The notes under the pieces were generated by a model. The model did not search any database and had not been told where the DNA came from. It worked only from the letters and a program-made list of their open reading frames with translations. The translations under genes were made by a program, and so were the position numbers. This document shows positions 2,089 through 26,170 of a DNA stretch of 64,000 bases, in pieces; positions within the stretch are counted from its first letter, which is position 1, and each line of letters starts with the position of its first letter. The DNA is from Adineta vaga (taxonomy: Eukaryota; Animalia; Rotifera): positions 4,278,001 through 4,342,000 of the forward strand of contig CP075493.1 of the NCBI GenBank assembly GCA_021613535.1, given 5' to 3'.

Positions 2089-4023
2089 ATGAATCTGATT
2101 AAACGTTCGTACGATTTTTATGAAACTGATCATGTTTATTCAAAAAAGTCACGAAGTAAGTTACCTATTGAAAGATTATTCCTATATTTTTTCATCTTTT
2201 TTTTAGCGACATTCAGTACAAAATAGTAAGTCATATGAATTTTAATTTATACGAATTGTTTTTTTTTCGATATTTTATAGTAGTTCAATTCCTATCTGTT
2301 TTGAACATTTACCCAATGAAATTTTGTTGGAAATATTTGATTATCTCGATGCGTATGATATTTATCGTGGATTTTCTCATTTAAATATTCGTTTTTCTAA
2401 TCTTCTACTTCGTTCATCACTTCCATTAAAAACTCGAATTCGATATGAATCAAAATCAACTATTGAATATCGTTGTCGACATGTAATCATTCCCAATGTA
2501 CATCGTCTTCTTTCTCTTCATCTTCATACTGATTCAATTATTCATAATTTCTTTAATTATTGTAATCTTGATTCATCATTTACTCGTTTAGAATCTATTG
2601 TTCTTAATGGAGTACCCGGTATGAAACTTCTAATGATTCTTTCTTATTTACAATCGTTATCTCGACTCTTCTCGCTAACAATTCTATTGGAAGAAGATTG
2701 TCTTTATACTTTAAATGATATCTATCGATTAATATTTCGATTACCTGTATTAAAATATAATAAATTATCCTTATCAGAGTATGATGAAATCAATATTACG
2801 ATACCAATAATGATCAATCAAACATTCAGTACTATCGAACATTTAATCATTGATTTTACTTGTAATATTGATGAACTTACATCGCTTCTGTACTATACTC
2901 CTCGTCTACGATATTTAACATGTAAACGAATAAGTCAACCCGAAGAAATGAATCAAAAAGAATTGCCATTAAGTTTAACGAATTTAGTTCATTGTTCATT
3001 TATACTCGAGTTGCTGACTTTTGATTTATTTGAAGTATTTTTAAAAAAAATTTCTACACAATTACAATTCTTCCGTCTTCAGACATCGTTCGATAGAGAT
3101 TATCTTGATGAAAAACGATGGAGATCGTTGATCAAGAAACATATGCCTCATTTACAAACATTTCATTTTGAATATTATCAGATGATCGAATTCGCAGATG
3201 ATGACCTACCAAATCATGAAGCAATCAAACAATTTACTTCAACATTTTGGACTGAACGACAATGGTATTTTGAATTTAAAGATTACTTTGATCGACATCT
3301 CTATTTAATACATCCATTCAAGTAAGTAAAAGAGGAAGAAAAACAACAAAAATGATAACATATCTTCTTTTGTTTAGGAAAACTTGGTTTAATTCTTCTG
3401 AACATGAACAAATCATCAATGAAAATACATTCGATACTTCATTAACTATCGAAGGATATGCATCGGATACTTGGGATACATTCTCTTTTAATAATATGAA
3501 ACTATCTCTTCAAGCCACTGGATTTACACATTTAAATATTGATTGCAATGGAATTCTTATCAACATGTTCATTGAACTTATACGTCTATTACCAAATCTT
3601 ACTTCATTAGAAGTATCATCCTTACCAAGTACGCAATTAAATTTTCTATCGACTGAAGATAATGAAATGCTTCTATTAGTATCAATTACTAATCGAATTA
3701 CCAAAGTTCGAATCAATCGAATTGATATTGTAGATGATATGAATTTTCTAATGAATCTTTGTCCACGTATGAAATATCTTGAAGTAATACATATAACAAA
3801 CAGTAATCTCGAGAATATTCTTGGAACAATATCAATGAACAATATAACACGTATACCTTATTTAAATTGTTTATCCCTGTATACCGCGAAATCCAAGGAA
3901 ACAATTATCGATGATATACATCATATTATTGATTTTGAAAGACTTTTTCATATTGAGAATGCTTTTCGTGATTATGAATTTCAATGTATAGGACAGAAAA
4001 TCTATTTGAAATGGAGATTATAG
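2089..4023 (+). CDS. F-box / LRR-like protein, 4 exons (2089-2155, 2207-2225, 2281-3321, 3378-4023)
   Basis: F-box motif FEHLPNEILLEIFDYLD; GT-AG introns with matching phases join ORFs 2324..3325 and 3352..4023 and give an ATG at 2089. Confidence 0.85.
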
Positions 4024-4256
4024 AAAAATGTTTTGTTTGTTTCTTTTTTTTGAAAGTTTATCATATCAATTAACCTAAAAAATACGATAAAATTACATAA
4101 CATGAGGAATGTATATTGGAAATTCCCAATTCATTTGTATGACTCATTCTTTGTATGTTATCAAACACGTGTTTTTATTGGAACTGTATGCGTTATAAAA
4201 GAACGAAAAAAAATAGACTTTTTCTTTTATTCTTTTAGAGTAAAAATCTCCAAGAA

Positions 4257-6090
4257 ATGAAACGTGTTCGAAGTACAGATGAAGTATTCGAAAAACAAAC
4301 AAAAAAATGTAAATTAAAATAATTTTATTCAGAAAAATATTCGTTTTTTTTTAAAATTTTAGTGACAATATTAAAGTAAATATGAAAAGTATTGTTCTCC
4401 TTTTTTTTTATAAATCTATAAATATTCTTTTCGTTTGTTACAATCTAGTCGAGTTATTTCATATATCGAACAATTACCGAATGAAATTTTTTATGAAATA
4501 TTTACTTATCTTGAATGTTGTCAATTATTTGAAGCATTTAATAATCTAAATCAACGTTTTCAACACTTATTATCTAGTTCATATCTTTCATTTCATGTTC
4601 AACTTGTTTCAAATTCGATATCTATTGCTGAATATCGTGCAAGGAATATTATTGTGCCAAATAAACATCGTATTCTTTCACTTTCATTATTGAATGGTTG
4701 GTATGATGATCAAATCTTTTCTTTACTCAATATTGATTCATCATTTAATCAACTTGAAACATTAGTTCTAAAAAATATCAATGCTGATCAATTGATTCCG
4801 ATACTTTCTAATCTAATTTCTCTTACTCGACTTTTTTCTCTAACTATTTATTTGAATGATGTTCATCAAGATCTTGGAAATATCTATCAATTAATCTTTC
4901 ATTTACCTGTATTAAAATCTATTCGAATTTTAGCTAGAAAATATCCTATCTTTACTGAAATATTATCAACTACGAATCAACCATGTACTTCTATTGAATC
5001 TATGACCATTAATCATCGTTGTACTTATAGTATTATTCAATCTTTCTTTTCAATAACTCCACATCTATCTCATTTAATTTGTGAAGAATTATTATCTTCA
5101 AGTTTACTTTATCCATCAATAGTATTGTCGAAGTTAACACATATTTCGATTGGTAATTGTAAATTATCATTTACACAATTCATTATTTGTATTAAAAGAC
5201 ATTGTCCAAATGTTCAAGTCTTACGATTAATAACATCAAATGATATTACTTATCTTGATATTGATCGTTGGGAACAAACAATTCAGAAATATTTATCTCA
5301 CCTACGAAAATTTCATCTTCAATATTATGCAACGATTACTCAACATTTTTCATTCTTGCCACATTTATGGCAAATTAATGGAATCATTTCACCATTTTGG
5401 TTAAGTAAACAATGTTTATTTGAGTGTCTATTTGATATGAATAATCCTTCTAATGGTCAAATGGTTTATTCAATAAAATATTCGAAATCATACGTAAAAA
5501 ATCATCCATTAAATAGAGATAAAGTTAAATTATCCTTTTCTATGTTAGCTGATTGTTTAGATTCAATGAAATGTAATGATATAATTGCAAATAATCTTGA
5601 AAAATATCTTCTACAAAAACGATTTAATCATTTGAAAATTAATTGTCAACAAATATCGATTAATACCCTGATTAAACTTGTATATTGTCTATCGGAACTT
5701 TTATCTTTACAAATATCGAATTTATCCGTATCAAAATTGAGAAAGTTATCTTCGTATGAGAAAGAAATCGTTCGAATTACTTCGAGAAAGAGCAAAATTA
5801 TTGAAATCTCTCTTAAACAAATCATTGAATTCGAACAAGTTAAATTTTTCATCGATCTTTGTCCTCGTATAGAATATTTAAACTTAAATTGTCTACATGA
5901 TATCAATTTAGAAATACTTATTCGAAAAATACTCATTGAAAATATTTCTCATCTTCGTGAAGTATGTTTTCATGATTGGAAGGGTAATATGAATGATTTC
6001 AAAGCTATGATTAATCATCAAGAACAGTTTTGTAATTACACTATGAAATCTTTTGATAAGAAGATTTCTCTGTTTCGAAAAATGTATTAA
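4257..6090 (+). CDS. F-box / LRR-like protein, tandem paralog (exons 4257-4308, 4363-4375, 4449-6090)
   Basis: F-box motif IEQLPNEIFYEIFTYL; same phase-1/micro-exon/phase-2 5' layout as the upstream paralog; shared NLDSSF/NIDSSF and YxLIF-LPVLK blocks. Confidence 0.85.
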
Positions 6091-10560: not shown

Positions 10561-11143
10561 TTCCTAAATGAAATCATCGAATTTAAATGACGCTATACAA
10601 TACTTCGTTTGTGTTTCTTTCAATGCGTATTTTATTACTAAATAACGACATTTCTTTCTACGTAGATCAATATCAAAAATAAATACACAGGCAGTAAATA
10701 AAGGTTGGTTTTTTTCTCATACTTACCACTTCATAACGTAAAGGCAGTTTTTTTGACACGATAAATAAATGAACACATGTTGGAAAAAGTTTTGAAAAAG
10801 ATCGATTTAATTTTCTGTCATTTGAAACTTGGTAAAAATCCAATGTAATTTGTAGAAAATTTTTAATGAGTGTAAAGTCCAAGTTAATATTTATCATTAA
10901 TTTTAGTTCTCGTATAGTATATATGTAAATGACAGAATGAGAAAATTCCAAGCGTTCTGTGTTTTTTTTCTTTTCTCCTTATTCTTTCATACGAGACTCA
11001 AAAACACTCCAAGGCGTCCTTTTACAAGTAGGGTTTTTTCCAACTACACTTTGACGAAGAAAAATTGAGAATAACCTTTTACACATCATGTTACATGTTA
11101 TTTAAGTTCTGAAATATGTTTTACCATTTTCATAAATATATCT

Positions 11144-12328
11144 ATGACTATGGTAGACGTGATGTCATCCAGCAAATTGAATAAATCTGACTCATCCAAT
11201 CATGCTTGTTTCTTACATGTCAGTCAAAAAGAAGCGAAAGAAACGATTGTATCTTCTTTAAACTCGACAATAAAACAAGACGAAATAGTACACAAACAAC
11301 AATATTCTTTGAATGAAGTAGATTCACTGCGTCAATTTCGAATTCGTACTCTATCTAATTGGCCACATTTTAAACCCAATGCTGAATCAATGGCATTGGC
11401 AGGATGGTTTTGCTGTAATTTAGTCGATCGAGTAATATGTATCTATTGTAACACGATTTGTCATGAATGGACAAAAGATGATGATCCAATTGCAGTTCAT
11501 GCTATACTTGCTCCTCATTGTCCATTTGTTCATTCTTTATCTGTAATAAAAACAGCACCAAAAATCGTCAATAATACCTTGGATAACAGATTTCAACCAT
11601 CACATCCAAACATGGCTGGAATCTCTCGTCGACAAGAAACCTTTTCGAATCCAACATGGAAAGATACTTCGCCAAGTATTGAAGATTTTGTTCGTGCAGG
11701 ATTCTTTTCTACAGGTATCTCCAATACAGTAACATGTTTTTATTGTAATGGTTCATTACATCAATGGGGAACGAATGATAGTCCAATGATTGAACACGTT
11801 CGATGGTTTCCAGATTGTACTTATGCAAGACATCTTTGCGGAGAAGAATTGTATGGAAAAGTATTGATTAGTAACAAACGAATGTTAACTGAGAATAAGA
11901 TCGATGAAAATGAACTAAAACGTTCAGTTGCAGCCAGACTTGATTTACCTGTTGTTCAACGTCTTCGTTCTCAATATTCATTAGGAATTATCAAACGTTG
12001 TCTTGAAGATCAATTAAAAAATAAAAATGATGATTTCGTATCGGATTTAGATTTCACAATGGCTTGTTTGATACTTCAAAAACAAATCGATATTATCAAA
12101 GGTTGTAAAGATAGAATTATAACTCCATCGAAACATCCGCAATTAGAAACTTCAATGAAATCATCAAAGCAATCATTAGGTGAATGTTTAATATGTCTTA
12201 CGGAAGAGAAAAAATTAGCATGTTTGCCCTGTGGACACCTTTGTGCTTGTGTTTCTTGCGGATATGCACTTCGTTCATGTCCTGTTTGTAGAGAAAAAAT
12301 TCAGTGTTTTTTGAGAATCAATTCATAG
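11144..12328 (+). CDS. Inhibitor of apoptosis protein (BIR-BIR-RING), intronless
   Basis: Two BIR motifs (CIYC..W..DDP..H..CPF; CFYC..W..DSPMIEH..CTY) and a C-terminal C3HC4 RING (CLIC..CGHLCACVSC..CPVCR). Confidence 0.93.
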   Translation: MTMVDVMSSSKLNKSDSSNHACFLHVSQKEAKETIVSSLNSTIKQDEIVHKQQYSLNEVDSLRQFRIRTLSNWPHFKPNAESMALAGWFCCNLVDRVICIYCNTICHEWTKDDDPIAVHAILAPHCPFVHSLSVIKTAPKIVNNTLDNRFQPSHPNMAGISRRQETFSNPTWKDTSPSIEDFVRAGFFSTGISNTVTCFYCNGSLHQWGTNDSPMIEHVRWFPDCTYARHLCGEELYGKVLISNKRMLTENKIDENELKRSVAARLDLPVVQRLRSQYSLGIIKRCLEDQLKNKNDDFVSDLDFTMACLILQKQIDIIKGCKDRIITPSKHPQLETSMKSSKQSLGECLICLTEEKKLACLPCGHLCACVSCGYALRSCPVCREKIQCFLRINS

Positions 12329-12541
12329 ATTTTAGTAGACGTTAAAATAAATAAATGGTATGCCCGATTTTCAGGGCAAATATTATAACTTTGCTGATTT
12401 CTTCTTGTTTTACTATACTCATATAATATACATCGATTATTTCAAAAATTTAAATAGTGATGTTCTTTCACGATTGTATTCAAAAGAAAGAAAATTATAA
12501 AAAACTTCCCACAATCATCAAATACTAGTTAATTTTTTCAT

Positions 12542-15010
12542 TTAAACGTCTGAGGATACAACGGATGATCGTTTTGGAATAACATCCAATCTTCGCGGTA
12601 CGTCGATAATAGATTTTCTGCTCGTATCAATGATTTGTTTTGATATTTCTGCTGACATTGCGGCTGTTTCCTTTTTGAGCTTCTCATTATTCTTTACTTT
12701 CTGAACTTCTTTAAGATATTTTTGTATTATAAAAATTTCTGCTCGACAGTCATAACAATGATCGAGTCCTTCATTAGGTACAGTGTCCATATCATGTTCA
12801 TAATGCATTATTCGTGTTACGTTTTGAAAATAAAGCAGAGAATTGGCAAATTCTTGATGATCATAATCGACCTTTTTAGCGTCTTTCTTCACAACCAATC
12901 GGCATTCCATACTTCTTCTTGATGCCCACGGTTCAATAATTTGGCGCCCCTGAAGATATGTCGTTTTACCTAACTCACGTGGAAGGCGAAAATATAGCAA
13001 GGATGCATCAGGTTTCATTGCATCATACCAACACATTTGATCCTCCATGTCTCTAGCCGGCACAGTATTCATTCCATATTGGTGTGGTTGGTAAGTACGA
13101 ACATTACAAATGAATAACACTTTTTTTTTTGAATTACCATATGTTCTTGCAATTGAACCACTGAGCTTTTCGCGTCGTATTACAATATTACGATGTGGTT
13201 TTATAGAAAATTCTTTGTCGTCGATTAAAATAAACTCAAAATTTGGAAATAATGAAGCCAAATAATTAATATGAATACCCGGAGCGGCGCCAGCATAAAT
13301 TACTTGATGGTCAGGATCAGTGCTATATTTTGTTAGAAATTCAATTTCAGGTAAAAGTAATTTTCGCTGTCCCCAATGTTCATTTGTAGTAATTTTTTGG
13401 GAATCAGAATTACTATCTCCTGGTAATTGCGTCGCTGTTGACAGTAAAATACGATTCATTTTGGTGAATTCTTCTTTGTGAAAGCGAAGTTCTTCTCCAC
13501 ATATAAAAACTTCACGTAAATGTGGATTATTATCATAGATCTCTTGCCCTATTGATGTAAGGTTTAATTTCTTTACGTCAAAACTTCTTTCAAACTTTAT
13601 ACGATCCACAAGTCTTCTTTCATCAGCATATAATTCCCTATCCGTTGCCGAATTCTGATTAATTTTTGGAAGTACGATATTGTTCGGTACATCTGGTTCA
13701 GAATTACTTCGATGGTAAGGTGATCGATGATTGTGATCGCGTGCGCCATGCTTCTTATTATTTCCATTTCCATTTCTAAATATAAATATTAGTAGCTTTG
13801 TGCATTATCAAAAAGAATTCAAGGCTGAATTATTCAATTTAAAGTTATCTTCTAGTTGACTTTGAGATCAGATATCGTTCGAATCTCACTATTCACATTT
13901 TGTTTAGATCAGTTATTTTACGTGTATTATTTTCTGAAATATTCAAACGTTACTATTATCCTACCCTGATACTAGTTTATTAAGCAATGGACGCATTTCT
14001 CTCATGTACGATATTGACCATATGATATCATCCATTGCTCGATGATTGACAGTATCTGATCCATTCCGTACTACTTGATCTTTGATCTTTCTTTCCAACC
14101 ATGGTGCCCATCGTTTCATGATCGCTTGAAATGAACTCACATCAATAATACGATAATGTAGATAGTCATGTACTTTTGGCATTTGCAACTCTAGCACGCG
14201 TTTATCGATATGAATTGAACTTCCAGCTAATGAGCACATCTTTGGTGGACAATGACGTTGTATTAAAGTCAACAGTTCATTTTCGACTTGATCCTTCGTC
14301 AGTCTTGATTTAAGACAATCAGCAAACAAATTATTACCACCATTCTTTCGATCTGCAAATGTTTTTTGATGCCAATCTCCGAGTTTATCCATAACGGATT
14401 GATCAAAATGAATCACCCAGTTACCTACAAATACAAAAATATGAATTTCGTTTATCAAAACTTTTCCTTTGCATCTTTCAAGTGCCGCCGAGTATATATA
14501 TATATATATACTACCTTTATCCAATGTGTTTAGGTCACTATCAGTAATGATGACAGCACATTCCATGATTTCTGGTTCTTCAATAGATGTCATTTCAAGA
14601 TCAAGCCAGATGATATTCATTGATTTTAATTTTTCTTCATCTGTAGGCCATCGAGATCCTCGTTCGACTTCAGCACCACCTGCACCAAATTTTTTCAACA
14701 ATACACATAGTTCTTCGTTTGCATCCTGAGAAGCAAGATCATATGGAGTGGAACCATCTGACGCACGTCGAACATTGACGTCGAACCTATACTTTTCTAT
14801 GACATGAGAAATAACGTCGGCCATGTCTCGTTCGACGAGTTCATGAAGTAATGCATTTTTATTATTCGATCTGTTTTGCCATTTCTCGATATTCTTAGCA
14901 CCGTAATCATCCTTAATCTCATCCAGTCTTTTTATCACTTTAGATTGATTATGCTTGTTCATTTGCATAAGAAGTTTTTCAAGTTCTGTATTAAGCTCAT
15001 GCATCGACAT
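12542..15010 (-). CDS. Predicted 729-aa fusion: ankyrin-like + oligoribonuclease (DEDDh, Orn/REXO2) + VP39-like cap 2'-O-MTase fold; exons 15010-14515, 14424-13965, 13775-12542
   Basis: Orn motifs WLDLEMT, LAGSSIHID, YLHYRIIDVSS, HRAMDDI; MTase motifs HWGQRKLL..EIEFL and VIYAGAAPGIHI. The 90-nt intron 14514-14425 is in frame. The 189-nt intron 13964-13776 (GG|GTAGGA ... TACTAAT..TTTAG|A) joins phase 2 to phase 2. Domains are high confidence; the fusion is moderate to high. Confidence 0.78.
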
Positions 15011-16740
15011 GTTGTTGCTGGTATGGTTGTTCGAAAACTTGCAGATGAATAGTGTAAGTAATGCTATTTTCTTACCTTAGTTTAAAGAAAAAAGAGGAAT
15101 AAAAAGCAACATGTAAAGCAATCTGTTTTTTTTTACCAACGAATCGTTACCCTCCGTTTGGAAGGAAGAAGAAGAAAGGAAAAGAAAAAGTAAACGATAG
15201 AAAGTAAAAAAAAAGAGCATACGCACGCGACATTCGTAGAATTCTAACTAAAATAACTGAGAACAATCGTAAAAGAACGTCGCTAGTTGCATATTCTCTA
15301 AACTGTTTGCTTTTATTCATAAAGAAATATTGCATCATATTCTGTGGGAAAAAAGTTTCTACATGACATAAAAATGTATACTGTATGTTTTTCTGAGTCA
15401 CATCAAACATCTGTCTATTGAAAACTTTAAATATAATGCTTTTTACCGACAAACCAAGTACGATCGCTAGATTAATTATCATCATAGATATCAGTTAGCT
15501 AATAAGTCATGGTTTTACATCATTGCCACTCTCGGATATTCATTTGTACAAAGATACTAAAAATCTATTGAATTAGTAGCCATTCATAGATAGGAATTCG
15601 GCAAAAACGAAAGTTACAAGTGAATGCATTCATCTTTCATATGTTCATGATCTCCATTTATCCTTATAGGATTATACTTACCCTATGTTTACAGAATATT
15701 GAAAGCAACGTATATATTTACGACAATAGAAAAGCAAATGATCAATCGATCACTTGTTTATTGTTCATTCCATAACAGAACATCGATCGAGTAAAATCCG
15801 AAACGGCTGTGGCTGATAGCAGACTTCCTTCTTATTTCTGGAAGTGTCGTTCTCTTCAGAAAAGTCAACCATATGTTACTCTTTTTTGAAGTAAATCCAC
15901 TTTGTTTTATGACTTTTGTCAAATAAACTTTTGTTCAAAAACATTATTCAGTGAATAGAATTTCATAACAACTGACAATATCGTGTTCCCCAATACGATA
16001 TTCATTTTTATCAGAATACATACGTTTCCAACCGTTGCATGAAAAAAACTAATGTATTCTAAGTTTAATTCCGATGCCGAAAACTTTTCATATTCAATCT
16101 TTTCAAACTGGATAACCTATGTTTGTGAATAATAGATTAAAGTCTATAAACGGTTGTCTGTTTCTTGTATTTTTTAAAAATGGGATCTCGCGATTAGTTT
16201 CATAATTATTCCCAAAATTTGTTATTAATTTGTAGTTAAATGAAATAACTAAACTTATTTTTCGAAGATGTCATTTATATTTCTAAAAAATACATGTGAC
16301 ATGTAGATGTGACTTTTTAGTTTTCTGAACAAGTTTATTAAATTATAAATATTGAAAAAAAAATGAGTGCATTATTCATGTTCAAGTATGAGTGTCGTTA
16401 ATATTTGGTTATTTTAAATGATTTCAGAGACGATGTTCTATCTCGTTTTTAATAAGAATAGACATGAAGATTTAGTCGTGACGTTTGTTAAATAATGAAG
16501 AGAAAATGAATGAGCAACTTAAATCTTGTTTTGTATTTTTGCTAACAGTATGATCTCAGAACTATCGGTAATGACGATAAATGGAAATAATGTAAAGGAT
16601 CATCATGAGAAAAATAAGATATATTAAAGTTAATGAACAAAGAACAACTCATGCATACTTCTTAGCAATCTTTTATAAATAAAAGAGAATAATAAAACAA
16701 ATGCACTTATTTCCACATTTATTCTCATTCAAATACAAAC

Positions 16741-17845
16741 ATGTCCTCTTCAGCTAATGTAAATCTTATATTAGAAGCCAATAATCTGAATTATATGGCT
16801 ATGATGTTTATTCGATGTTACTGTTTTATCGTCATACCTATCGGAACAATTGGTCATCTATTGAATATTTATGCATTTACGCGTCCATCATTAAGATCTA
16901 ATTCTTGTAGTCGGTACTTTTTAGCAGCGAGTATCATTGGAATAATGCATACTCTATATGCTTTACCGATGAGAATGATACAATCAGCTTTTGTTGATAC
17001 AGATCCAGGAGCATATTCAGTTGTATTTTGTAAAATAACATGGCTTTGTTTAAATTCATTAAGGCATGTAGATTGTATTTTTTATCCATTCTTGTGTCAC
17101 TCTCCTTTCATCCTCTTGTAGAAGTTCAGGTTTCTGGTTAATTGTGCTAGCTTCTGTTGATCGATACTTGTGTAGTTGTTCATCAGCAAACACAAGAGCA
17201 TGGAGCAGTGTACATGTGGCTAATCGAGTCATTCCTTTGACTATTGTCACTCTTTTCACTGCATATATTCATGTTCCAATCTTCTTCAGAATAGATATTA
17301 TACCCGCTACACAAAAACCGATCTGTTATCCACCTGGTCCTCCAGGAACTTATCGAATTATTCTATCATATTTTAATTTGATTTTTCTCGGATTATCTCC
17401 ATCCTTGTCAATGCTGATCTTTGGTCTTCTTACACGACGTAACATCGAACGGTCAAAGCGACTTCTAGTTGCACCTGTAACAAATGTATTGAATGCAACA
17501 AATCGAAAGACAAATACACATATGCTACGAATGTTATTTGTTCAAGTATTTGTATATTGCATAACCGGATTAACATTTTCTGTAGCATTAATATATACAG
17601 CAATTAATGCTAGTAAAACAAAAAATATTCTTGAAGTTGCTCAAGAAAATATGATTAATGCAGTTGTTGGTATGATGTCTACTGTTGGTCCATGTTTAAG
17701 TTTCTATTTATTCACACTTTCAAGTGGTTTGTTTCGAAAAGAACTGAAGAATCTTTTTGTTCAAATCTATCTGATTGGTGGTCATTTACAAGTTCCAACT
17801 ACCATGCCGAATACTGGCCATCGAAGAACCATAAATAGACCATAG
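16741..17845 (+). CDS. Orphan class-A (rhodopsin-like) GPCR; probable GC-AG intron 17064-17121
   Basis: Seven hydrophobic segments, TM3 Cys and DRY, TM7 SFYLFTLSS..FRKEL. Confidence 0.85.
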
Positions 17846-19544: not shown

Positions 19545-20522
19545 TTAATCTTGTAATTGATTTTGAATACCTGTTGGAATAGTACTTGATGTTTTCTCTT
19601 TAAATGACAGATAATCAACAAGTCCAGTAGGTAACATTGATAATGGGAAACAGATGACACTTGATTGAAATCCTGGTCGATAACGGATATGTGGAACCGT
19701 ATTCATAACTGCATGTTGAAGAACATGAATAACTTTGATTGGATCGTCAGCATGTTTCGTCATATCTTTATTGTTTATACTTTCATACCATTCTTTCAAA
19801 TATGCATCTCCCCATCGTTCTTGAACATCATTTGGAAGTAAACTAACAAATTCAGGATATGGTCTAACAGTACTTACAATAATAGGTGTTCGCATAAGTC
19901 CAGGTTCAATGATACTGACACGTAAATTCCATGAAGCCATTTCTCGACGAAGACAATCCGAAAATGCTTCAAGTGCATATTTTGATGCACAGTATGCAGA
20001 CATACCTGGTCCTGCCAGATAACCACCAATCGACGAAACATTAATCACACGAGAATCTCGCTTTGCGATCAATAATGGTAGGAATTTTTTAGTCATAGCT
20101 ACATGTCCAAAAAAATTCACATCCATAACTTTTCGCATCGTTTCAATTGATGTCCAATCAATAAGATATCCATCGTCTATACCTGCATTATTGACAAGTG
20201 CATGTAAAACTTTTGTTTTGCTAGTGATTAATTCAAATGCAGCATCAATATCTTCTTGTTTCGTAATATCGAGACGAAAAACTGTGGCTTTTGGTGAAAG
20301 TTTGTCTTTTAGTGAAGCTATACTCTCTGGAAGAAAGACACCAGCAACAACATGAAAACCTTGTTTATCAAGTTCGAGAGCTAGACCATGACCAAAGCCA
20401 CTATCACATCCAGAAATTAAAACATATTTTCCATTTGGATTGATATTTGGTGATGGACGTAAATATTGATATAATCGATAGCTAAAATAGAATATGATTC
20501 CAAGGAGAACTACTAGAAACAT
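19545..20522 (-). CDS. Short-chain dehydrogenase/reductase (RDH/HSD17B6/DHRS9-like), chimeric copy
   Basis: N-terminal TM, SGCDSGFG, LVNNAG, YCASK, IIEPG. Confidence 0.92.
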   Translation of the reverse strand: MFLVVLLGIIFYFSYRLYQYLRPSPNINPNGKYVLISGCDSGFGHGLALELDKQGFHVVAGVFLPESIASLKDKLSPKATVFRLDITKQEDIDAAFELITSKTKVLHALVNNAGIDDGYLIDWTSIETMRKVMDVNFFGHVAMTKKFLPLLIAKRDSRVINVSSIGGYLAGPGMSAYCASKYALEAFSDCLRREMASWNLRVSIIEPGLMRTPIIVSTVRPYPEFVSLLPNDVQERWGDAYLKEWYESINNKDMTKHADDPIKVIHVLQHAVMNTVPHIRYRPGFQSSVICFPLSMLPTGLVDYLSFKEKTSSTIPTGIQNQLQD

Positions 20523-22813: not shown

Positions 22814-23791
22814 TTAATCTTGTAATTGATTTTGAATACCTGTTGGAATAGTACTTGATGCTTTCTCTTTAAATGCCACATAATCAACAAGTCCAGTAGG
22901 TAACATTGATAATGGGAAATATATGACACTTGAGTCAAATCCTGGTCGATAACGGATATGTGGAACCGTATTCATAACTGCATGTTGAAGAACATGAATA
23001 ACTTTGATTGGATCGTCAGCATGTTTCGTCACATCCACATTGAATACACTTTCATGCCACCCTTTCAAATATGCATCTCCCCATCGTTCTTGAACATCAT
23101 TTGGAAGTAAACTAACAAATTCAGGATATGGTCTAACAGTACTTACAATAATAGGTGTTCGCATAAATCCGGGTTCAATGATACTGACACGTAAATTCCA
23201 TGAAGCCATTTCTCGACGAAGACAATCCGAAAATGCTTCAAGTGCATATTTTGATGCACAGTATGCAGACATACCTGGTCCTGCTAGATAACCACCAACT
23301 GAACAAACATTAACTACACGTGAATCACGTTTTGCGATCAATAATGGTAGGAATTTTTTAGTCATAGCTACATGTCCAAAAAAATTCACATCCATAACTT
23401 TTCGCATCGTTTCAATTGATGTCCAATCAATAAGATATCCATCGTCTATACCTGCATTATTGACAAGTGCATGTAAAACTTTTGTTTTGCTAGTGATTAA
23501 TTCAAATGCAGCATCAATATCTTCTTGTTTCGTAATATCGAGACGAAAAACTGTGGCTTTTGGTGAAAGTTTGTCTTTTAGTGAAGCTATACTCTCTGGA
23601 AGAAAGACACCAGCAACAACATGAAAACCTTGTTTATCAAGTTCGAGAGCTAGACCATGACCAAAGCCACTATCACATCCAGAAATTAAAACATATTTTC
23701 CATTTGGATTGATATTTGGTGATGGACGTAAATATTGATATAATCGATAGCTAAAATAGAATATGATTCCAAGGAGAACTACTAGAAACAT
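22814..23791 (-). CDS. SDR (RDH/HSD17B6-like), duplicate of 19545..20522
   Basis: Same motifs; N-terminal half identical to 19545..20522. Confidence 0.92.
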   Translation of the reverse strand: MFLVVLLGIIFYFSYRLYQYLRPSPNINPNGKYVLISGCDSGFGHGLALELDKQGFHVVAGVFLPESIASLKDKLSPKATVFRLDITKQEDIDAAFELITSKTKVLHALVNNAGIDDGYLIDWTSIETMRKVMDVNFFGHVAMTKKFLPLLIAKRDSRVVNVCSVGGYLAGPGMSAYCASKYALEAFSDCLRREMASWNLRVSIIEPGFMRTPIIVSTVRPYPEFVSLLPNDVQERWGDAYLKGWHESVFNVDVTKHADDPIKVIHVLQHAVMNTVPHIRYRPGFDSSVIYFPLSMLPTGLVDYVAFKEKASSTIPTGIQNQLQD

Positions 23792-24528: not shown

Positions 24529-25678
24529 TTCATTCATTGTTAATAAGAGAACCAGCACAAAAGTGGCCATAAACCGGCATACGAAGTGATACAAACGGAA
24601 ATTCATCATGAAAAACGACTGTTGTCGAAGAATATCCACACGAATAACTTGTATTACAGATAAATAAGATAGGGTGACCTTCAAAGAATCATATTATTAC
24701 TATAAATAATTATCTTGTTCAATAGGATAAAACTTACCGAGTATTTCGGATGTAGTAGTAGTTGACAATATTGTTGCAGGTGATGCTACTGTTGGTAGCG
24801 TTGGTGGATTCTCTACTATATCCATGATATAATTCAAATATGGTAATACACGCGTATAGAGTCCTTCCGTTAGACATGCATTACGAAAACTTGTTATACC
24901 AATAAGTTCATATCGTTGATTTTCATTAGAGTAGATCATCAATGGATTGCCAGTATTACCTACATATGAAACTATGTTATATTATCAATAACAATCAGAC
25001 AAAGAAATACCTGAACAAGTACCTAGAAAGGAAAAGCATCTAGTTAGAGATTTGTTTTCACGAAGAAGATTATTTACCACTTGCACAAAGTTGTGTATCG
25101 GCATTCGTGAATTGATTTGGAGTACATTGAGCATTTTTTTGTACGATAACTTGTTGTAACACTGATGCGACTGTTGCAGTGGGAATCGTTTCAGACGAAC
25201 CATTCCAACCGATCACTGTTAAGTTCATATTTTCTAGTATTGTTAAATCTGATATTTTTATTTGGGAGACATACGATGTAGTTAAATTGAATGGCAATGA
25301 AACACGTATAAGTGCTAGATCATTAAGGAAATGTTTATTGGTATAATTTGGATGAGAAATAAAGTGTGGTATAAAACGAATTTGTTCGGGCGGTTGATCA
25401 AGATTATTCAATGTATGTATACTTGCTTTAATTGTAAAGTGCGACATAAATACGATTGAACTTTGAAAACAACTATCAGATATCAGTAAGAATATATCAG
25501 AAATGATCACACCATTACAGTCGATTTTTATCAAATTTAAAAAATTCAATCGTAATAAAACCATCCAAGGATATTTACCCACGGACACCTCAGAACCATT
25601 GATTATTCTTGAATTGAATTGTTCAGAAAAATTGTAAGAAATCAATGTAAAGAAAAATAGTACATGAAAATAACTCAT
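24529..25678 (-). CDS. Secreted serine-protease homolog (non-catalytic) with a 12-nt micro-exon 25022-25011; 3' end runs into the duplicated protease relic and stops
   Basis: Signal peptide, RIINGSEV..YPWMVLL, NDLALI; TAAHC is ISDSC and GDSGGP is GNTGNP after splicing. Confidence 0.65.
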
Positions 25679-26170
25679 GATAATATTCTCTTTGTAGCGT
25701 TGCAACAGGAAATAATTGAAATATTAACAACAGCTACAGAAAGATAAGAATATGATCCTATGATAAGAAATTATAAATTGAAACATATTATTCATATGAT
25801 ATTTTTGACTCTAATACACCTAATTACATGAAACATGAATTCAGATAGTCAATTTCAAGAATTTCATTCATTTATTCGGACTAATTCTCTATTTTCAATT
25901 AGCAACTGATGATAAGTATTCCTATTGAAGAGAATATCCTAAAATAATATCAAACATATAATCTGAATAGAACTAAAATTAGTTGTTCGATATTTATAAA
26001 AGAAAGTTATTTCATTCTCCTATCAATTGTTATTCTTTTTTCTTCTCGTTCTTCTTATTATTAACAGAGATAAATATAAAAATCCACGTGTCTCCACTAC
26101 CGTACCGTATCTACTAACGATAAAACACTAACATCAACATACTTTTCTTTTACATTTTATAATCTATATC

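Follow-up and report, generated by a model that had tools for sequence, protein, structure and literature searches.

An expressed gene of the rotifer Adineta vaga joins an Orn/REXO2-like nuclease domain to a VP39-like domain with an altered catalytic tetrad

Introduction

Enzymes of the Orn/REXO2 type carry out the final step of RNA decay and prevent dinucleotide-primed transcription; normally they are stand-alone proteins. A binding role has a precedent in the cap methyltransferase VP39, whose second, non-catalytic function is that of a processivity factor of poly(A) polymerase. The roles of the residues that form the 5'-phosphate cap and the stacking contact in REXO2 have been described, and this phosphate cap restricts Orn/REXO2 to pNpN dinucleotides (PMC6613908). 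A comparative paper on cap methyltransferases does not mention rotifers (PMC9479742).

Here we analyze a locus from the bdelloid rotifer Adineta vaga. The window is a stretch of 64,000 nucleotides (assembly GCA_021613535.1, contig CP075493.1, positions 4,278,001 to 4,342,000), and all positions below are counted within it. A first-pass annotation of this DNA had proposed that an ankyrin part, an Orn nuclease and a VP39-like methyltransferase are joined by splicing into a single protein, which was taken as a candidate cap-recognising RNA nuclease.

Results

The locus is one expressed three-exon gene

The features of the gene are listed in Table 1. Its exons contribute 496 + 460 + 1231 nt, i.e. 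729 codons once the 90-nt intron 1 is removed as well. The Orn reading frame ends with the letters TCA GG/G TAG, where the slash marks the exon border; the donor GT lies at 13964-13963 and the TAG stop is intronic. Intron 2 has a branch-like TACTAAT at 13794-13788 and an acceptor AG at 13777-13776, and the first letter of exon 3, at 13775, completes the codon GG/A for Gly. From there the methyltransferase frame is open, with codon 106 of exon 3 as its first in-frame ATG. The sequence hence confirms what had been noted earlier, namely that the apparent Orn stop lies within a donor site and that the methyltransferase frame extends in matching phase back to a strong acceptor over about 100 codons without an ATG; the exact count is 105.

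Table 1. Features of the fusion gene. Positions refer to the window and residue numbers to the 729-aa protein.
Feature	Position	Strand	Description
Orn-VP39-like fusion gene	15010-14515, 14424-13965, 13775-12542	-	three exons; 729-aa protein
Exon 1	14515..15010	-	ATG 15010-15008; aa 1-165 and first base of codon 166; RNA contigs over 14519-15037
Exon 1 content			N-terminal helical region with two ankyrin-like repeats (~aa 1-118); start of Orn including D137 and E139 (WLDLEMT)
Intron 1	14425..14514	-	90 nt, GT..AG, in frame, stop-free
Exon 2	13965..14424	-	remainder of Orn/REXO2 domain: W183, S235, D239, Y256, R257, S262, H293, D298
Intron 2	13776..13964	-	189 nt, GT..AG; holds the apparent Orn stop TAG 13963-13961
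Exon 3	12542..13775	-	low-complexity linker, VP39-like pseudo-methyltransferase, TAA stop 12544-12542
Linker (in exon 3)			aa 320 to ~365; AATGGA repeat at its start
VP39-like domain (in exon 3)			~aa 366-715: K457, YAGAAPG 479-485, D504, N543 (for Asp), Y580 (for Lys), E609, DHCYDC 657-662
Divergent segment	12944..13065		inside exon 3, between the positions of N543 and Y580

The RNA evidence consists of assembled contigs, not raw reads, and the kind of each run was guessed from its intergenic depth. Run X14, which covers intergenic DNA about 100x, was treated as DNA; runs X1, X11 and X5 have zero depth at 15175-16000 and behave as RNA. Runs X1 (study P1) and X11 (study P5) each contain a contig of 438 letters, which comprises 13363-13775 and 25 letters that resume at 13965. 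The joint skips 189 letters and has GT..AG borders on the minus strand. The exon-2 contigs of both runs stop exactly at 13965 and 14426, and the interior of intron 2 has no depth in X1. The third contig, from X5 (study P2, organism label B), is 395 letters long with 288 letters of exon 2 and 107 of exon 3; its joint (13769 to 13965) skips 195 letters, which corresponds to one AATGGA repeat unit fewer and keeps the frame. In two of the three junction contigs, those from X1 and X11, the short side of 25 letters is under the 31-letter bridging rule; this should be the expected look of a k=31 unitig at a fork between spliced and unspliced sequence.

Intron 1 is spliced in X5, where 14519 is joined to 14426, and in X11, where a loose end at 14426 continues with letters of exon 1. 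In X1 and X11 it still has partial depth, about 7 as compared with 23-27. The contig data are compatible with an additional short transcript that may end in intron 2. The RNA check across 13965/13775 that the first-pass annotation had proposed thus yielded exact junction contigs from three studies. These results show a single expressed Adineta vaga gene with three exons on the minus strand of 12542-15010, and a single 729-aa protein with ankyrin-like, Orn and VP39-like parts, made through the proposed junction, is supported by sequence and RNA contigs.

Every run, including the DNA run X14, also contains a second contig of 199 letters that matches the divergent segment at its ends only (joint 12943 to 13066, side of 30). 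A third intron at this place was rejected: the borders are not GT..AG, the length is not a multiple of three and the joint occurs also in the DNA run. Our reading is that the second contig represents a strongly divergent second allele.

The Orn domain keeps the DEDDh and 5'-phosphate-cap residues

The exons were searched separately, and full-length comparisons were made with the public protein P0247 and its orthologues; the 30 intron-encoded residues of P0247 were dropped for numbering and identity counts. Exon 2 matches the Pfam family RNase_T (9e-10) and human REXO2 (E 1.4e-19, about 33% identity). Alignment to the structures 6n6i and 6j7y shows that the DEDDh set is complete, with D137, E139, D239, H293 and D298 in the places of D15, E17, D115, H162 and D167 of REXO2; these residues are invariant among 23 homologues. 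The 5'-phosphate cap is also present (S235, Y256, R257 and S262 for REXO2 S111, Y132, R133 and S138), as is the stacking Trp (W183 for W64). The model of the orthologue P0248 (residues 1-335, pLDDT 85.9), from which the fold is predicted, matches REXO2 with E 8e-16 and TMt 0.86-0.90. By analogy the domain would be a homodimer with activity limited to dinucleotides. A strict dinucleotide specificity is not certain, because the wedge residue L21 of REXO2 is replaced by Ile143 (L, I or F among the homologues) and because the Orn subfamily has an insertion of 5 residues (..GGNxLF..) after the Trp. Since the phosphate cap is kept, a direct attack on capped fragments is unlikely, i.e. the predicted active site should not accept capped RNA.

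The VP39-like domain has lost catalytic residues and is still conserved

Exon 3 contains a match to PARP_regulatory (PF01358; 1.8e-14, 53.8 bits against a cut-off of 25.4), and VP39 itself is matched with E 6e-06 by phmmer and E 3e-26 by a profile. In the model of the domain (pLDDT 89.6) Foldseek aligns about 308 columns with VP39, close to its full length (E 4e-18, TMt up to 0.79). The assignment to the VP39-type family in the first-pass annotation therefore holds, as the Pfam score is above the cut-off and the model has the VP39 fold.

The catalytic tetrad K-D-K-E of VP39 (K41, D138, K175, E207) reads K457, N543, Y580 and E609. The position of K175 is occupied by Y, N, T, S or R in all 22 Orn-fused copies, and 13 of these also lack Asp138; in contrast, 172 unfused relatives have kept the tetrad. 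Since the catalytic Asp and Lys are lost, the domain is predicted to be a catalytically dead homologue and not a functional cap 2'-O-methyltransferase. The SAM motif YAGAAPG and D504, equivalent to VP39 G68-G72 and D95, are kept in the Adineta vaga copy and in 20/22 fused copies; degraded motifs occur in P0058 (YLENSSN) and P0034 (YTGAAPR). The retained motif predicts a SAM-binding pocket, and a motif does not by itself prove binding.

A VP39-style recognition of the m7G cap appears doubtful from the alignment, because the Tyr at the place of VP39 Y22 is lost and the equivalent of the cap contact E233 is Ala in the Adineta vaga copy. Active relatives conserve this Tyr about 20 residues ahead of K41; it is equated with Y22 by spacing only and is probably the cap-stacking residue. 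The dead clade has lost a Tyr and a His that lie upstream of the WGQRK motif and are conserved in at least 85% of the active members. For VP39 F180 and D182 the alignment has a gap in all family members.

Pairs of sequences from 15 fusions have a mean identity of 0.49-0.51 in the methyltransferase core and the C-extension as compared to 0.21 in the linker, a 2.3-fold difference, and about 23 residues are conserved in the dead clade only. These patterns suggest that the dead domain is still under constraint.

The N-terminal part is ankyrin-like

A Pfam scan of exon 1 gave no ankyrin match at E 0.01 or better. With the limit relaxed to E 1 all matches stayed sub-threshold; the Ank_2 match of the Adineta vaga copy is weak (E 0.019; score 16 bits, cut-off 27.3), and in the homologues P0037 and P0254 the ankyrin match passes or nears the cut-off. 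The model of the orthologue P0248 has two helix-pair units in this part. The ankyrin part of the first-pass annotation hence stands as ankyrin-like helix pairs in an orthologue model, but as a Pfam assignment it is below the cut-off in this copy.

The fusion is confined to bdelloid rotifers

At least 20 full-length Ank-Orn-PF01358 proteins were found in Adineta and Rotaria, and the domain of the fusion is also kept in unnamed metagenome rotifers. The architecture is confined to bdelloid rotifers and comprises at least three old subfamilies. The closest orthologue DNA is 53-61% identical at the protein level. The orthologues A. ricciae P0248, the closest with 61% in the methyltransferase part, and A. 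steineri P0013 have the same order of Ank, Orn and dead methyltransferase and have lost the catalytic Lys. A metagenomic orthologous locus has Ank, RNase_T and PARP_regulatory ORFs in a row and an IAP neighbour as in Adineta vaga. The Adineta vaga genome contains a second fused paralogue on another chromosome (G000:C4:14509275-14511469); it is an old duplicate, 43-58% identical by domain, with matching domain order and, judged by exon spacing, matching intron placement, and it too has lost the catalytic Lys. Ank-Orn proteins without the methyltransferase domain occur in other eukaryotes (P0254, P0256), and a canonical REXO2, 34% identical, is also encoded in the genome (G000:C3:7742287).

The same genome encodes a standalone VP39-like protein without Orn, P0041 (I4U23_011430, G000:C3:2618081-2619263), in which K-D-K-E is intact and which is presumably a working enzyme. 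P0041 and the standalone P0093 from Didymodactylos carnosus are 43% identical to exon 3 and have the same N- and C-extensions; unlike P0041, P0093 shows a gap in the column of the second Lys. In two trees the bdelloid clade had SH-aLRT support of 97-98 and the dead, fused clade 96-99. P0041 branches basally in the bdelloid clade beside P0093, and both trees place these two closest to the dead clade as its outgroups. This shows that the dead domains are one clade next to the rotifers' own standalone intact VP39-like gene. Giant-virus relatives (20 from IMG/VR) are 37-43% identical. After these were added no sister group of the bdelloid VP39-like clade was found; the backbone was unresolved and the bdelloid clade held. 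With no sister group supported, we make no claim of horizontal gene transfer.

Public records and neighbouring genes

The fusion is already in GenBank as Adineta vaga I4U23_001358, with the same junction of exons 2 and 3 (LVSG/NGNG). This model wrongly retains intron 1, which places 30 extra residues within the Orn fold; these residues are absent from the orthologues, and the correct length is 729 aa instead of 759 aa. Further copies from Adineta vaga, A. steineri, A. ricciae and Rotaria spp. are held in GenBank/UniProt as unnamed or automatically named proteins, and the automatic name of the orthologues, 'cap-specific mRNA 2'-O-methyltransferase', is misleading. A literature search (bdelloid oligoribonuclease; VP39 in rotifers) did not find the architecture in any paper or characterised protein. 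The earlier statement that it was not known from any characterised protein is thus correct for the literature, but the proteins themselves were already in the databases.

The neighbouring genes encode, according to Pfam matches of their ORFs, an IAP, a GPCR fragment, two short-chain dehydrogenases and a trypsin. The idea of a defence island was rejected, as these neighbours include no defence genes.

Discussion

We consider it reasonably probable that the locus encodes a homodimeric pNpN nuclease joined, in one expressed gene, to a dead methyltransferase and an ankyrin part with a non-catalytic, binding or regulatory function. The nuclease would act like Orn/REXO2 as a homodimer on dinucleotides or nanoRNA and convert pNpN to NMPs. 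We infer that the dead methyltransferase and the ankyrin part perform no catalysis and may bind SAM/SAH, a protein partner or a 5' segment of an RNA. The bound ligand or partner would position the nuclease or control it, and the most plausible place for this is where mRNA 5' ends are turned over. The linker is long, variable, disordered and of low complexity, which argues for flexible tethering.

The automatic UniProt name implies a bifunctional enzyme with an active cap-specific 2'-O-methyltransferase and an oligoribonuclease. The PF01358 score, the VP39 fold, the SAM motif and the kept equivalents of K41 and E207 speak for it, but the second Lys is absent from 22/22 copies and its variation between Y, N, T, S and R points to relaxed selection and not to a new catalytic residue. 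Furthermore Asp138 is Asn here, and the same genome has the separate K-D-K-E copy P0041. A bifunctional enzyme is therefore very improbable. The loss of catalytic residues could also mean that the methyltransferase part is a decaying relic and that Ank-Orn alone is functional, as the degraded SAM motifs of P0058 and P0034 and the Ank-Orn proteins P0254 and P0256, which lack the domain, would allow. However, three or more subfamilies from Adineta and Rotaria, as well as the unnamed metagenome rotifers, have kept the long open frame. The domain is moreover 2.3-fold better conserved than the linker, with clade-specific conserved residues and a confident fold, so that a relic is improbable. Hardly credible is the view that there are two separate genes and that the fusion is an artefact of annotation or assembly. 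The Orn ORF does have its own genomic stop, and prokaryote-style gene callers split the locus in metagenomes; but the junction contigs come from three studies with exact GT..AG borders, exon 3 has 105 ATG-free codons, and the junction recurs in independent annotations of several species.

The first-pass annotation had favoured a nuclease that senses or clears capped RNA, possibly in antiviral defence: the VP39-like domain would bind m7G-capped fragments and pass them to the nuclease. A non-catalytic VP39-like domain suits a binding role, relatives of the domain are elsewhere fused to XRN, a cap N7-methyltransferase, PCIF1_WW and a DEAD helicase, and giant viruses carry active relatives. Against this, the tetrad reads K-N-Y-E, the dead clade no longer has the Tyr at the Y22 position, this copy carries Ala where VP39 has E233, and nothing in the family alignment corresponds to F180 or D182, which makes the cap grip doubtful. 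The Orn phosphate cap is furthermore expected to bar anything beyond a 5'-phosphate (PMC6613908), and evidence for antiviral defence, which was looked for among the neighbouring ORFs with Pfam, was not found. Taken together a cap-guided scavenger is unlikely and the label of a cap-recognising nuclease is not sustained. It is an equally long shot that the pseudo-methyltransferase serves a lineage-specific pathway as a sensor of a ligand or RNA end coupled to dinucleotide clearance; for this it would use its retained SAM/SAH pocket and a surface that became conserved in this clade. One form would be the disposal of what mRNA decay leaves over next to the cap, namely 2'-O-methylated di- or oligonucleotides, for which ordinary Orn should be a poor enzyme; another would be a removal of nanoRNA tied to the methylation state. 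If true, it would be a new use of a dead cap enzyme as a reader of a product or ligand.

On the favoured reading of a nuclease with a binding or regulatory partner domain, a bdelloid lineage has long kept, in several paralogues, Orn joined to an inactivated cap methyltransferase. This is a natural experiment in how an enzyme becomes a module for binding or regulation. The finding does not open onto a long-standing question; it provides a concrete and cheap target for expression and assays in research on RNA decay and pseudoenzymes, together with a corrected gene model.

Compared with human REXO2 and bacterial Orn (PDB 6n6i, 6rci, 6n6a), the rotifer protein shares the DnaQ fold, the DEDDh residues, the S/Y/R/S phosphate cap and the stacking Trp; it differs in its fused C-terminal part of 410 aa and in its membership of a distinct eukaryotic subfamily whose N-terminus is ankyrin-like. 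With vaccinia and monkeypox VP39 (PDB 1av6, 8cgb) and with TbMTr2 and TbMTr3 of Trypanosoma brucei it has PF01358, the fold, the SAM motif and the equivalents of K41 and E207 in common. The rotifer domain departs from VP39 in having Asn for D138, Tyr for K175 and Ala for E233, and in the loss of the Tyr at the place of Y22. Its N-terminal helices (NPHLREVF) and C-terminal DHCYDC are absent from VP39 and present in protist and giant-virus relatives. Other VP39-like fusions have as partners the XRN 5'-3' exonuclease, a cap N7-methyltransferase, a DEAD helicase, PCIF1_WW or RRM, and none has Orn; only P0228 (PCIF1_WW) among them departs from K-D-K-E, with K-D-R-E. Like the rotifer protein, these fusions, among them the environmental XRN-VP39-like fusion P0209, carry a VP39-like domain in one chain with a nuclease or cap enzyme.

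Gene structure and transcription

The window (G000:C1:4278001-4342000, in a genome of 100.8 Mb and six contigs) is AT-rich and eukaryotic, with about 30% G+C. We re-read exons, introns and phases from the minus strand; everything that the first-pass annotation had stated about the sequence was correct (see table). The phases of exons 2 and 3 fit (GG/A), the three exons give 729 codons, and the first 105 codons of exon 3 contain no in-frame ATG. The A. vaga protein I4U23_001358 in GenBank (P0247) is 100% identical to both ORFs of the fusion. It has the same exon 2-exon 3 junction, but keeps intron 1, resulting in 759 aa. The readthrough places 30 extra residues inside the Orn fold; because the orthologues do not have them, 729 aa is the better model.

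Next, four public runs were mapped on positions 11000-16000; the RNA evidence consists of assembled contigs, and the kind of each run is the tool's guess. X14 has a depth of about 100x both in genes and between them and is therefore DNA. X1, X11 and X5 behave as transcriptomes, since they have zero depth at 15175-16000. X1 (study P1) and X11 (study P5) contain a 438-letter contig, which spans 13363-13775 and then has 25 more letters that resume at 13965; the exon-2 contigs of both runs end exactly at 13965 and 14426. One side of these two joints has only 25 letters, which should be expected of a k=31 unitig at a fork between spliced and unspliced sequence. X5 (study P2, second organism label, B) contains a 395-letter contig, in which 288 letters of exon 2 are joined to 107 of exon 3. 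Its joint (13769 to 13965) spans six bases beyond 189; as a tandem AATGGA repeat stands at the start of exon 3 (13757-13775), X5 has one unit fewer and is still in frame. Hence the 13965/13775 junction, which had been claimed and proposed for an RNA check, occurs exactly there in X1 and X11 and one repeat unit shorter in X5. The X5 contig also carries 14 differences over the next 107 bases of exon 3. In orthologues the linker is likewise a variable tandem repeat, with RGASNHH-like units in P0001, P0003 and P0006.

Intron 2 has no depth in X1. Record 30 of X5 and a loose end in X11 show intron 1 spliced out; its depth of about 7, versus 23-27, in X1 and X11 suggests that it is partly retained there. 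The RNA contigs and all of the orthologues support its removal.

Each of the four runs, the DNA run X14 among them, has a second contig of 199 letters at 12944-13065, which matches at its ends only (12914-12943 and 13066-13112). This is probably a second, strongly diverged allele of the loop that separates the two lost catalytic positions.

Features of the fusion gene, its surroundings and related A. vaga copies
Feature	Position	Strand	Remarks
Exon 1	15010-14515	-	from sequence
Intron 1	14514-14425	-	90 nt, GT..AG, in frame, no stop
Exon 2	14424-13965	-	from sequence
Intron 2	13964-13776	-	189 nt, GT..AG; apparent stop TAG 13963-13961; TACTAAT 13794-13788
Exon 3	13775-12542	-	from sequence
DHCYDC element	~12737-12796		exon-3 residues 327-346
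IAP gene	11144-12328	+	two BIR + RING, 394 aa, intronless-looking, tail-to-tail with fusion
7tm_1 fragment	17144-17845
Short-chain dehydrogenase paralogues (tandem)	19545-20522, 22814-23791	-	325 aa; adh_short, E ~1e-44
Trypsin-like ORF	25070-25705
I4U23_001345 (P0250), recent partial duplicate of fusion	G000:C1:4266356-4268916 (L016 3357-5917)		25 kb upstream of fusion, ~9-12 kb before window start
Second complete fusion	A. vaga C4		43/58/44% identity by part
Standalone VP39-like gene (P0041)	A. vaga C3
Canonical REXO2	A. vaga C3

The nuclease and VP39-like parts

Exon 2 matches human REXO2 with E 1.4e-19. Mapping on structure 6n6i, with residue roles taken from PMC6613908, showed that the DEDDh residues D15, E17, D115, H162 and D167 of REXO2 correspond to D137, E139, D239, H293 and D298, and the phosphate cap (S111, Y132, R133, S138) to S235, Y256, R257 and S262. 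W64 is W183, and Ile143 takes the place of the wedge L21. The catalytic residues do not vary among 23 homologues, nor do R257, S262 and S235. A predicted model of the Ank-Orn half of the nearest orthologue (pLDDT 85.9) aligned with REXO2 at TMt 0.86-0.90. From residues and model, the nuclease part looks competent.

PF01358 is found in exon 3 with 53.8 bits (Pfam). The domain model, built from a 65-sequence alignment (pLDDT 89.6), matches monkeypox/vaccinia VP39 over ~308 columns (E 4e-18, TMt up to 0.79). The VP39 tetrad K41/D138/K175/E207 aligns with K/N/Y/E in the fusion. Among all the proteins compared, the 22 Orn-fused copies have without exception lost Lys175 (Y, N, T, S or R instead), and 13 of them have also lost Asp138. 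K-D-K-E is present in 172 unfused relatives, including the A. vaga standalone P0041; some 50 further sequences without it are mostly exon-only calls on metagenome contigs, in the same clade as the fusions. A comparison of 62 dead with 172 active sequences showed that the Tyr and His directly upstream of WGQRK are gone in the dead clade. The lost Tyr precedes the first Lys by about 20 residues and so, by spacing alone, would be equivalent to the cap-stacking Y22 of VP39. The counterpart of VP39 E233 is Ala in this copy. Judged by these residues, the VP39-like part is a predicted conserved pseudoenzyme; this call and the Ank-Orn-VP39-like architecture are almost certainly correct.

Distribution, origin and neighbouring loci

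With each exon searched on its own, exon 3 gave 426 relatives. Full-length proteins of 690-759 aa with PF00929 and PF01358 (ankyrin in some) occur in Adineta steineri, A. ricciae, Rotaria sordida, R. magnacalcarata and Rotaria sp. The top-scoring matches come from metagenome contigs and are ORFs of the size of an exon (53-56% identity, 412-520 aa). One such contig, L013, carries consecutive Ank, RNase_T and PARP_regulatory ORFs and then a BIR+RING IAP gene. The architecture is thus conserved but restricted.

Rotifer sequences form one clade in both trees (SH-aLRT 97-98). P0041 is basal in it, together with the Didymodactylos protein P0093, whose second-Lys column is a gap. All sequences that are dead or fused group in an inner clade (SH-aLRT 96-99), which comprises at least three subfamilies. 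Most simply, a duplicate of the rotifers' own VP39-like gene would have joined an Ank-Orn gene, and catalysis would then have been lost ahead of the divergence of the subfamilies. Other eukaryotes have Ank-Orn proteins that lack the methyltransferase (P0254, P0256). Giant-virus MAGs contain relatives at 37-43% identity; we name no donor because the tree backbone is unresolved.

I4U23_001345 is a young chimeric gene (RNase_T plus IBR/RBR). Positions 3071-4394 of its locus, L016, are 94.9% identical in DNA to 15299-13974 of the window, a segment that starts upstream of the gene and takes in exon 1, intron 1 and almost the whole of exon 2, breaking off 9 nt short of its donor. Next comes an RBR E3-ligase ORF. 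In the copy, the ankyrin part is frameshifted near codon 84, and the stacking Trp of the Orn pocket is replaced by Arg. Its public model begins at the Met inside DLEMT and so is without the first two catalytic residues. The IAP gene also adjoins the orthologous locus on L013 (10386-11558); synteny is therefore kept across distant bdelloids. The dehydrogenases, trypsin-like ORF and 7tm_1 fragment are ordinary context.

Possible function

The locus produces a single expressed protein, in which a flexible linker connects an intact Orn site to a dead but conserved VP39-like domain with a SAM motif. Two separate genes would agree with the apparent stop behind exon 2, but not with the spliced contigs. 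An active methyltransferase would suit the SAM motif YAGAAPG, which is retained with the next Asp; the loss of the second Lys of the tetrad in every Orn-fused copy speaks against it. A neutral relic, too, would fit that loss, but is unlikely. Among 15 fusions, the methyltransferase core and C-extension have a mean pairwise identity of 0.49-0.51; the linker reaches 0.21, Orn 0.64 and the N-terminus 0.40. About 23 positions are conserved in the dead clade only (62 dead versus 172 active sequences), and the dead domain thus appears to be still constrained.

The first-pass annotation had suggested that the protein may sense or clear capped RNA fragments, possibly in antiviral defense, as a cap-guided scavenger would. 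In environmental eukaryotes or viruses, VP39-like domains occur in one chain with a DEAD helicase, a cap guanine-N7 methyltransferase, an XRN 5'-3' exonuclease, RRM and PCIF1_WW (P0152, P0207, P0209, P0215, P0220, P0228); the domain is a promiscuous mRNA 5'-end module. The phosphate cap, however, restricts Orn to 5'-phosphorylated dinucleotides, and groups larger than a 5'-phosphate are expected to fit poorly, if at all (PMC6613908). It is therefore unlikely that the nuclease attacks capped fragments directly. Our own, tentative proposal is a homodimeric dinucleotide/nanoRNA nuclease, in which both non-catalytic modules would bind a ligand, an RNA segment or a partner and thereby localize or regulate the nuclease. 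With relatives fused to XRN, cap N7-methyltransferase, PCIF1_WW and DEAD helicase, the site of action could plausibly be mRNA 5'-end turnover.

The claim that this architecture is not known from a characterized protein agrees with the literature, where we found no mention of it in any paper; the Adineta and Rotaria proteins were, however, already in databases. The eukaryote/giant-virus branch of PF01358 also has an invariant DHCYDC element (G-x-D-H-C-x-D-C-x-x-E) and a conserved upstream His (alignments A1 and A2), which may form a metal-binding site. Active and dead relatives both keep the element and the His, whereas VP39 has neither.
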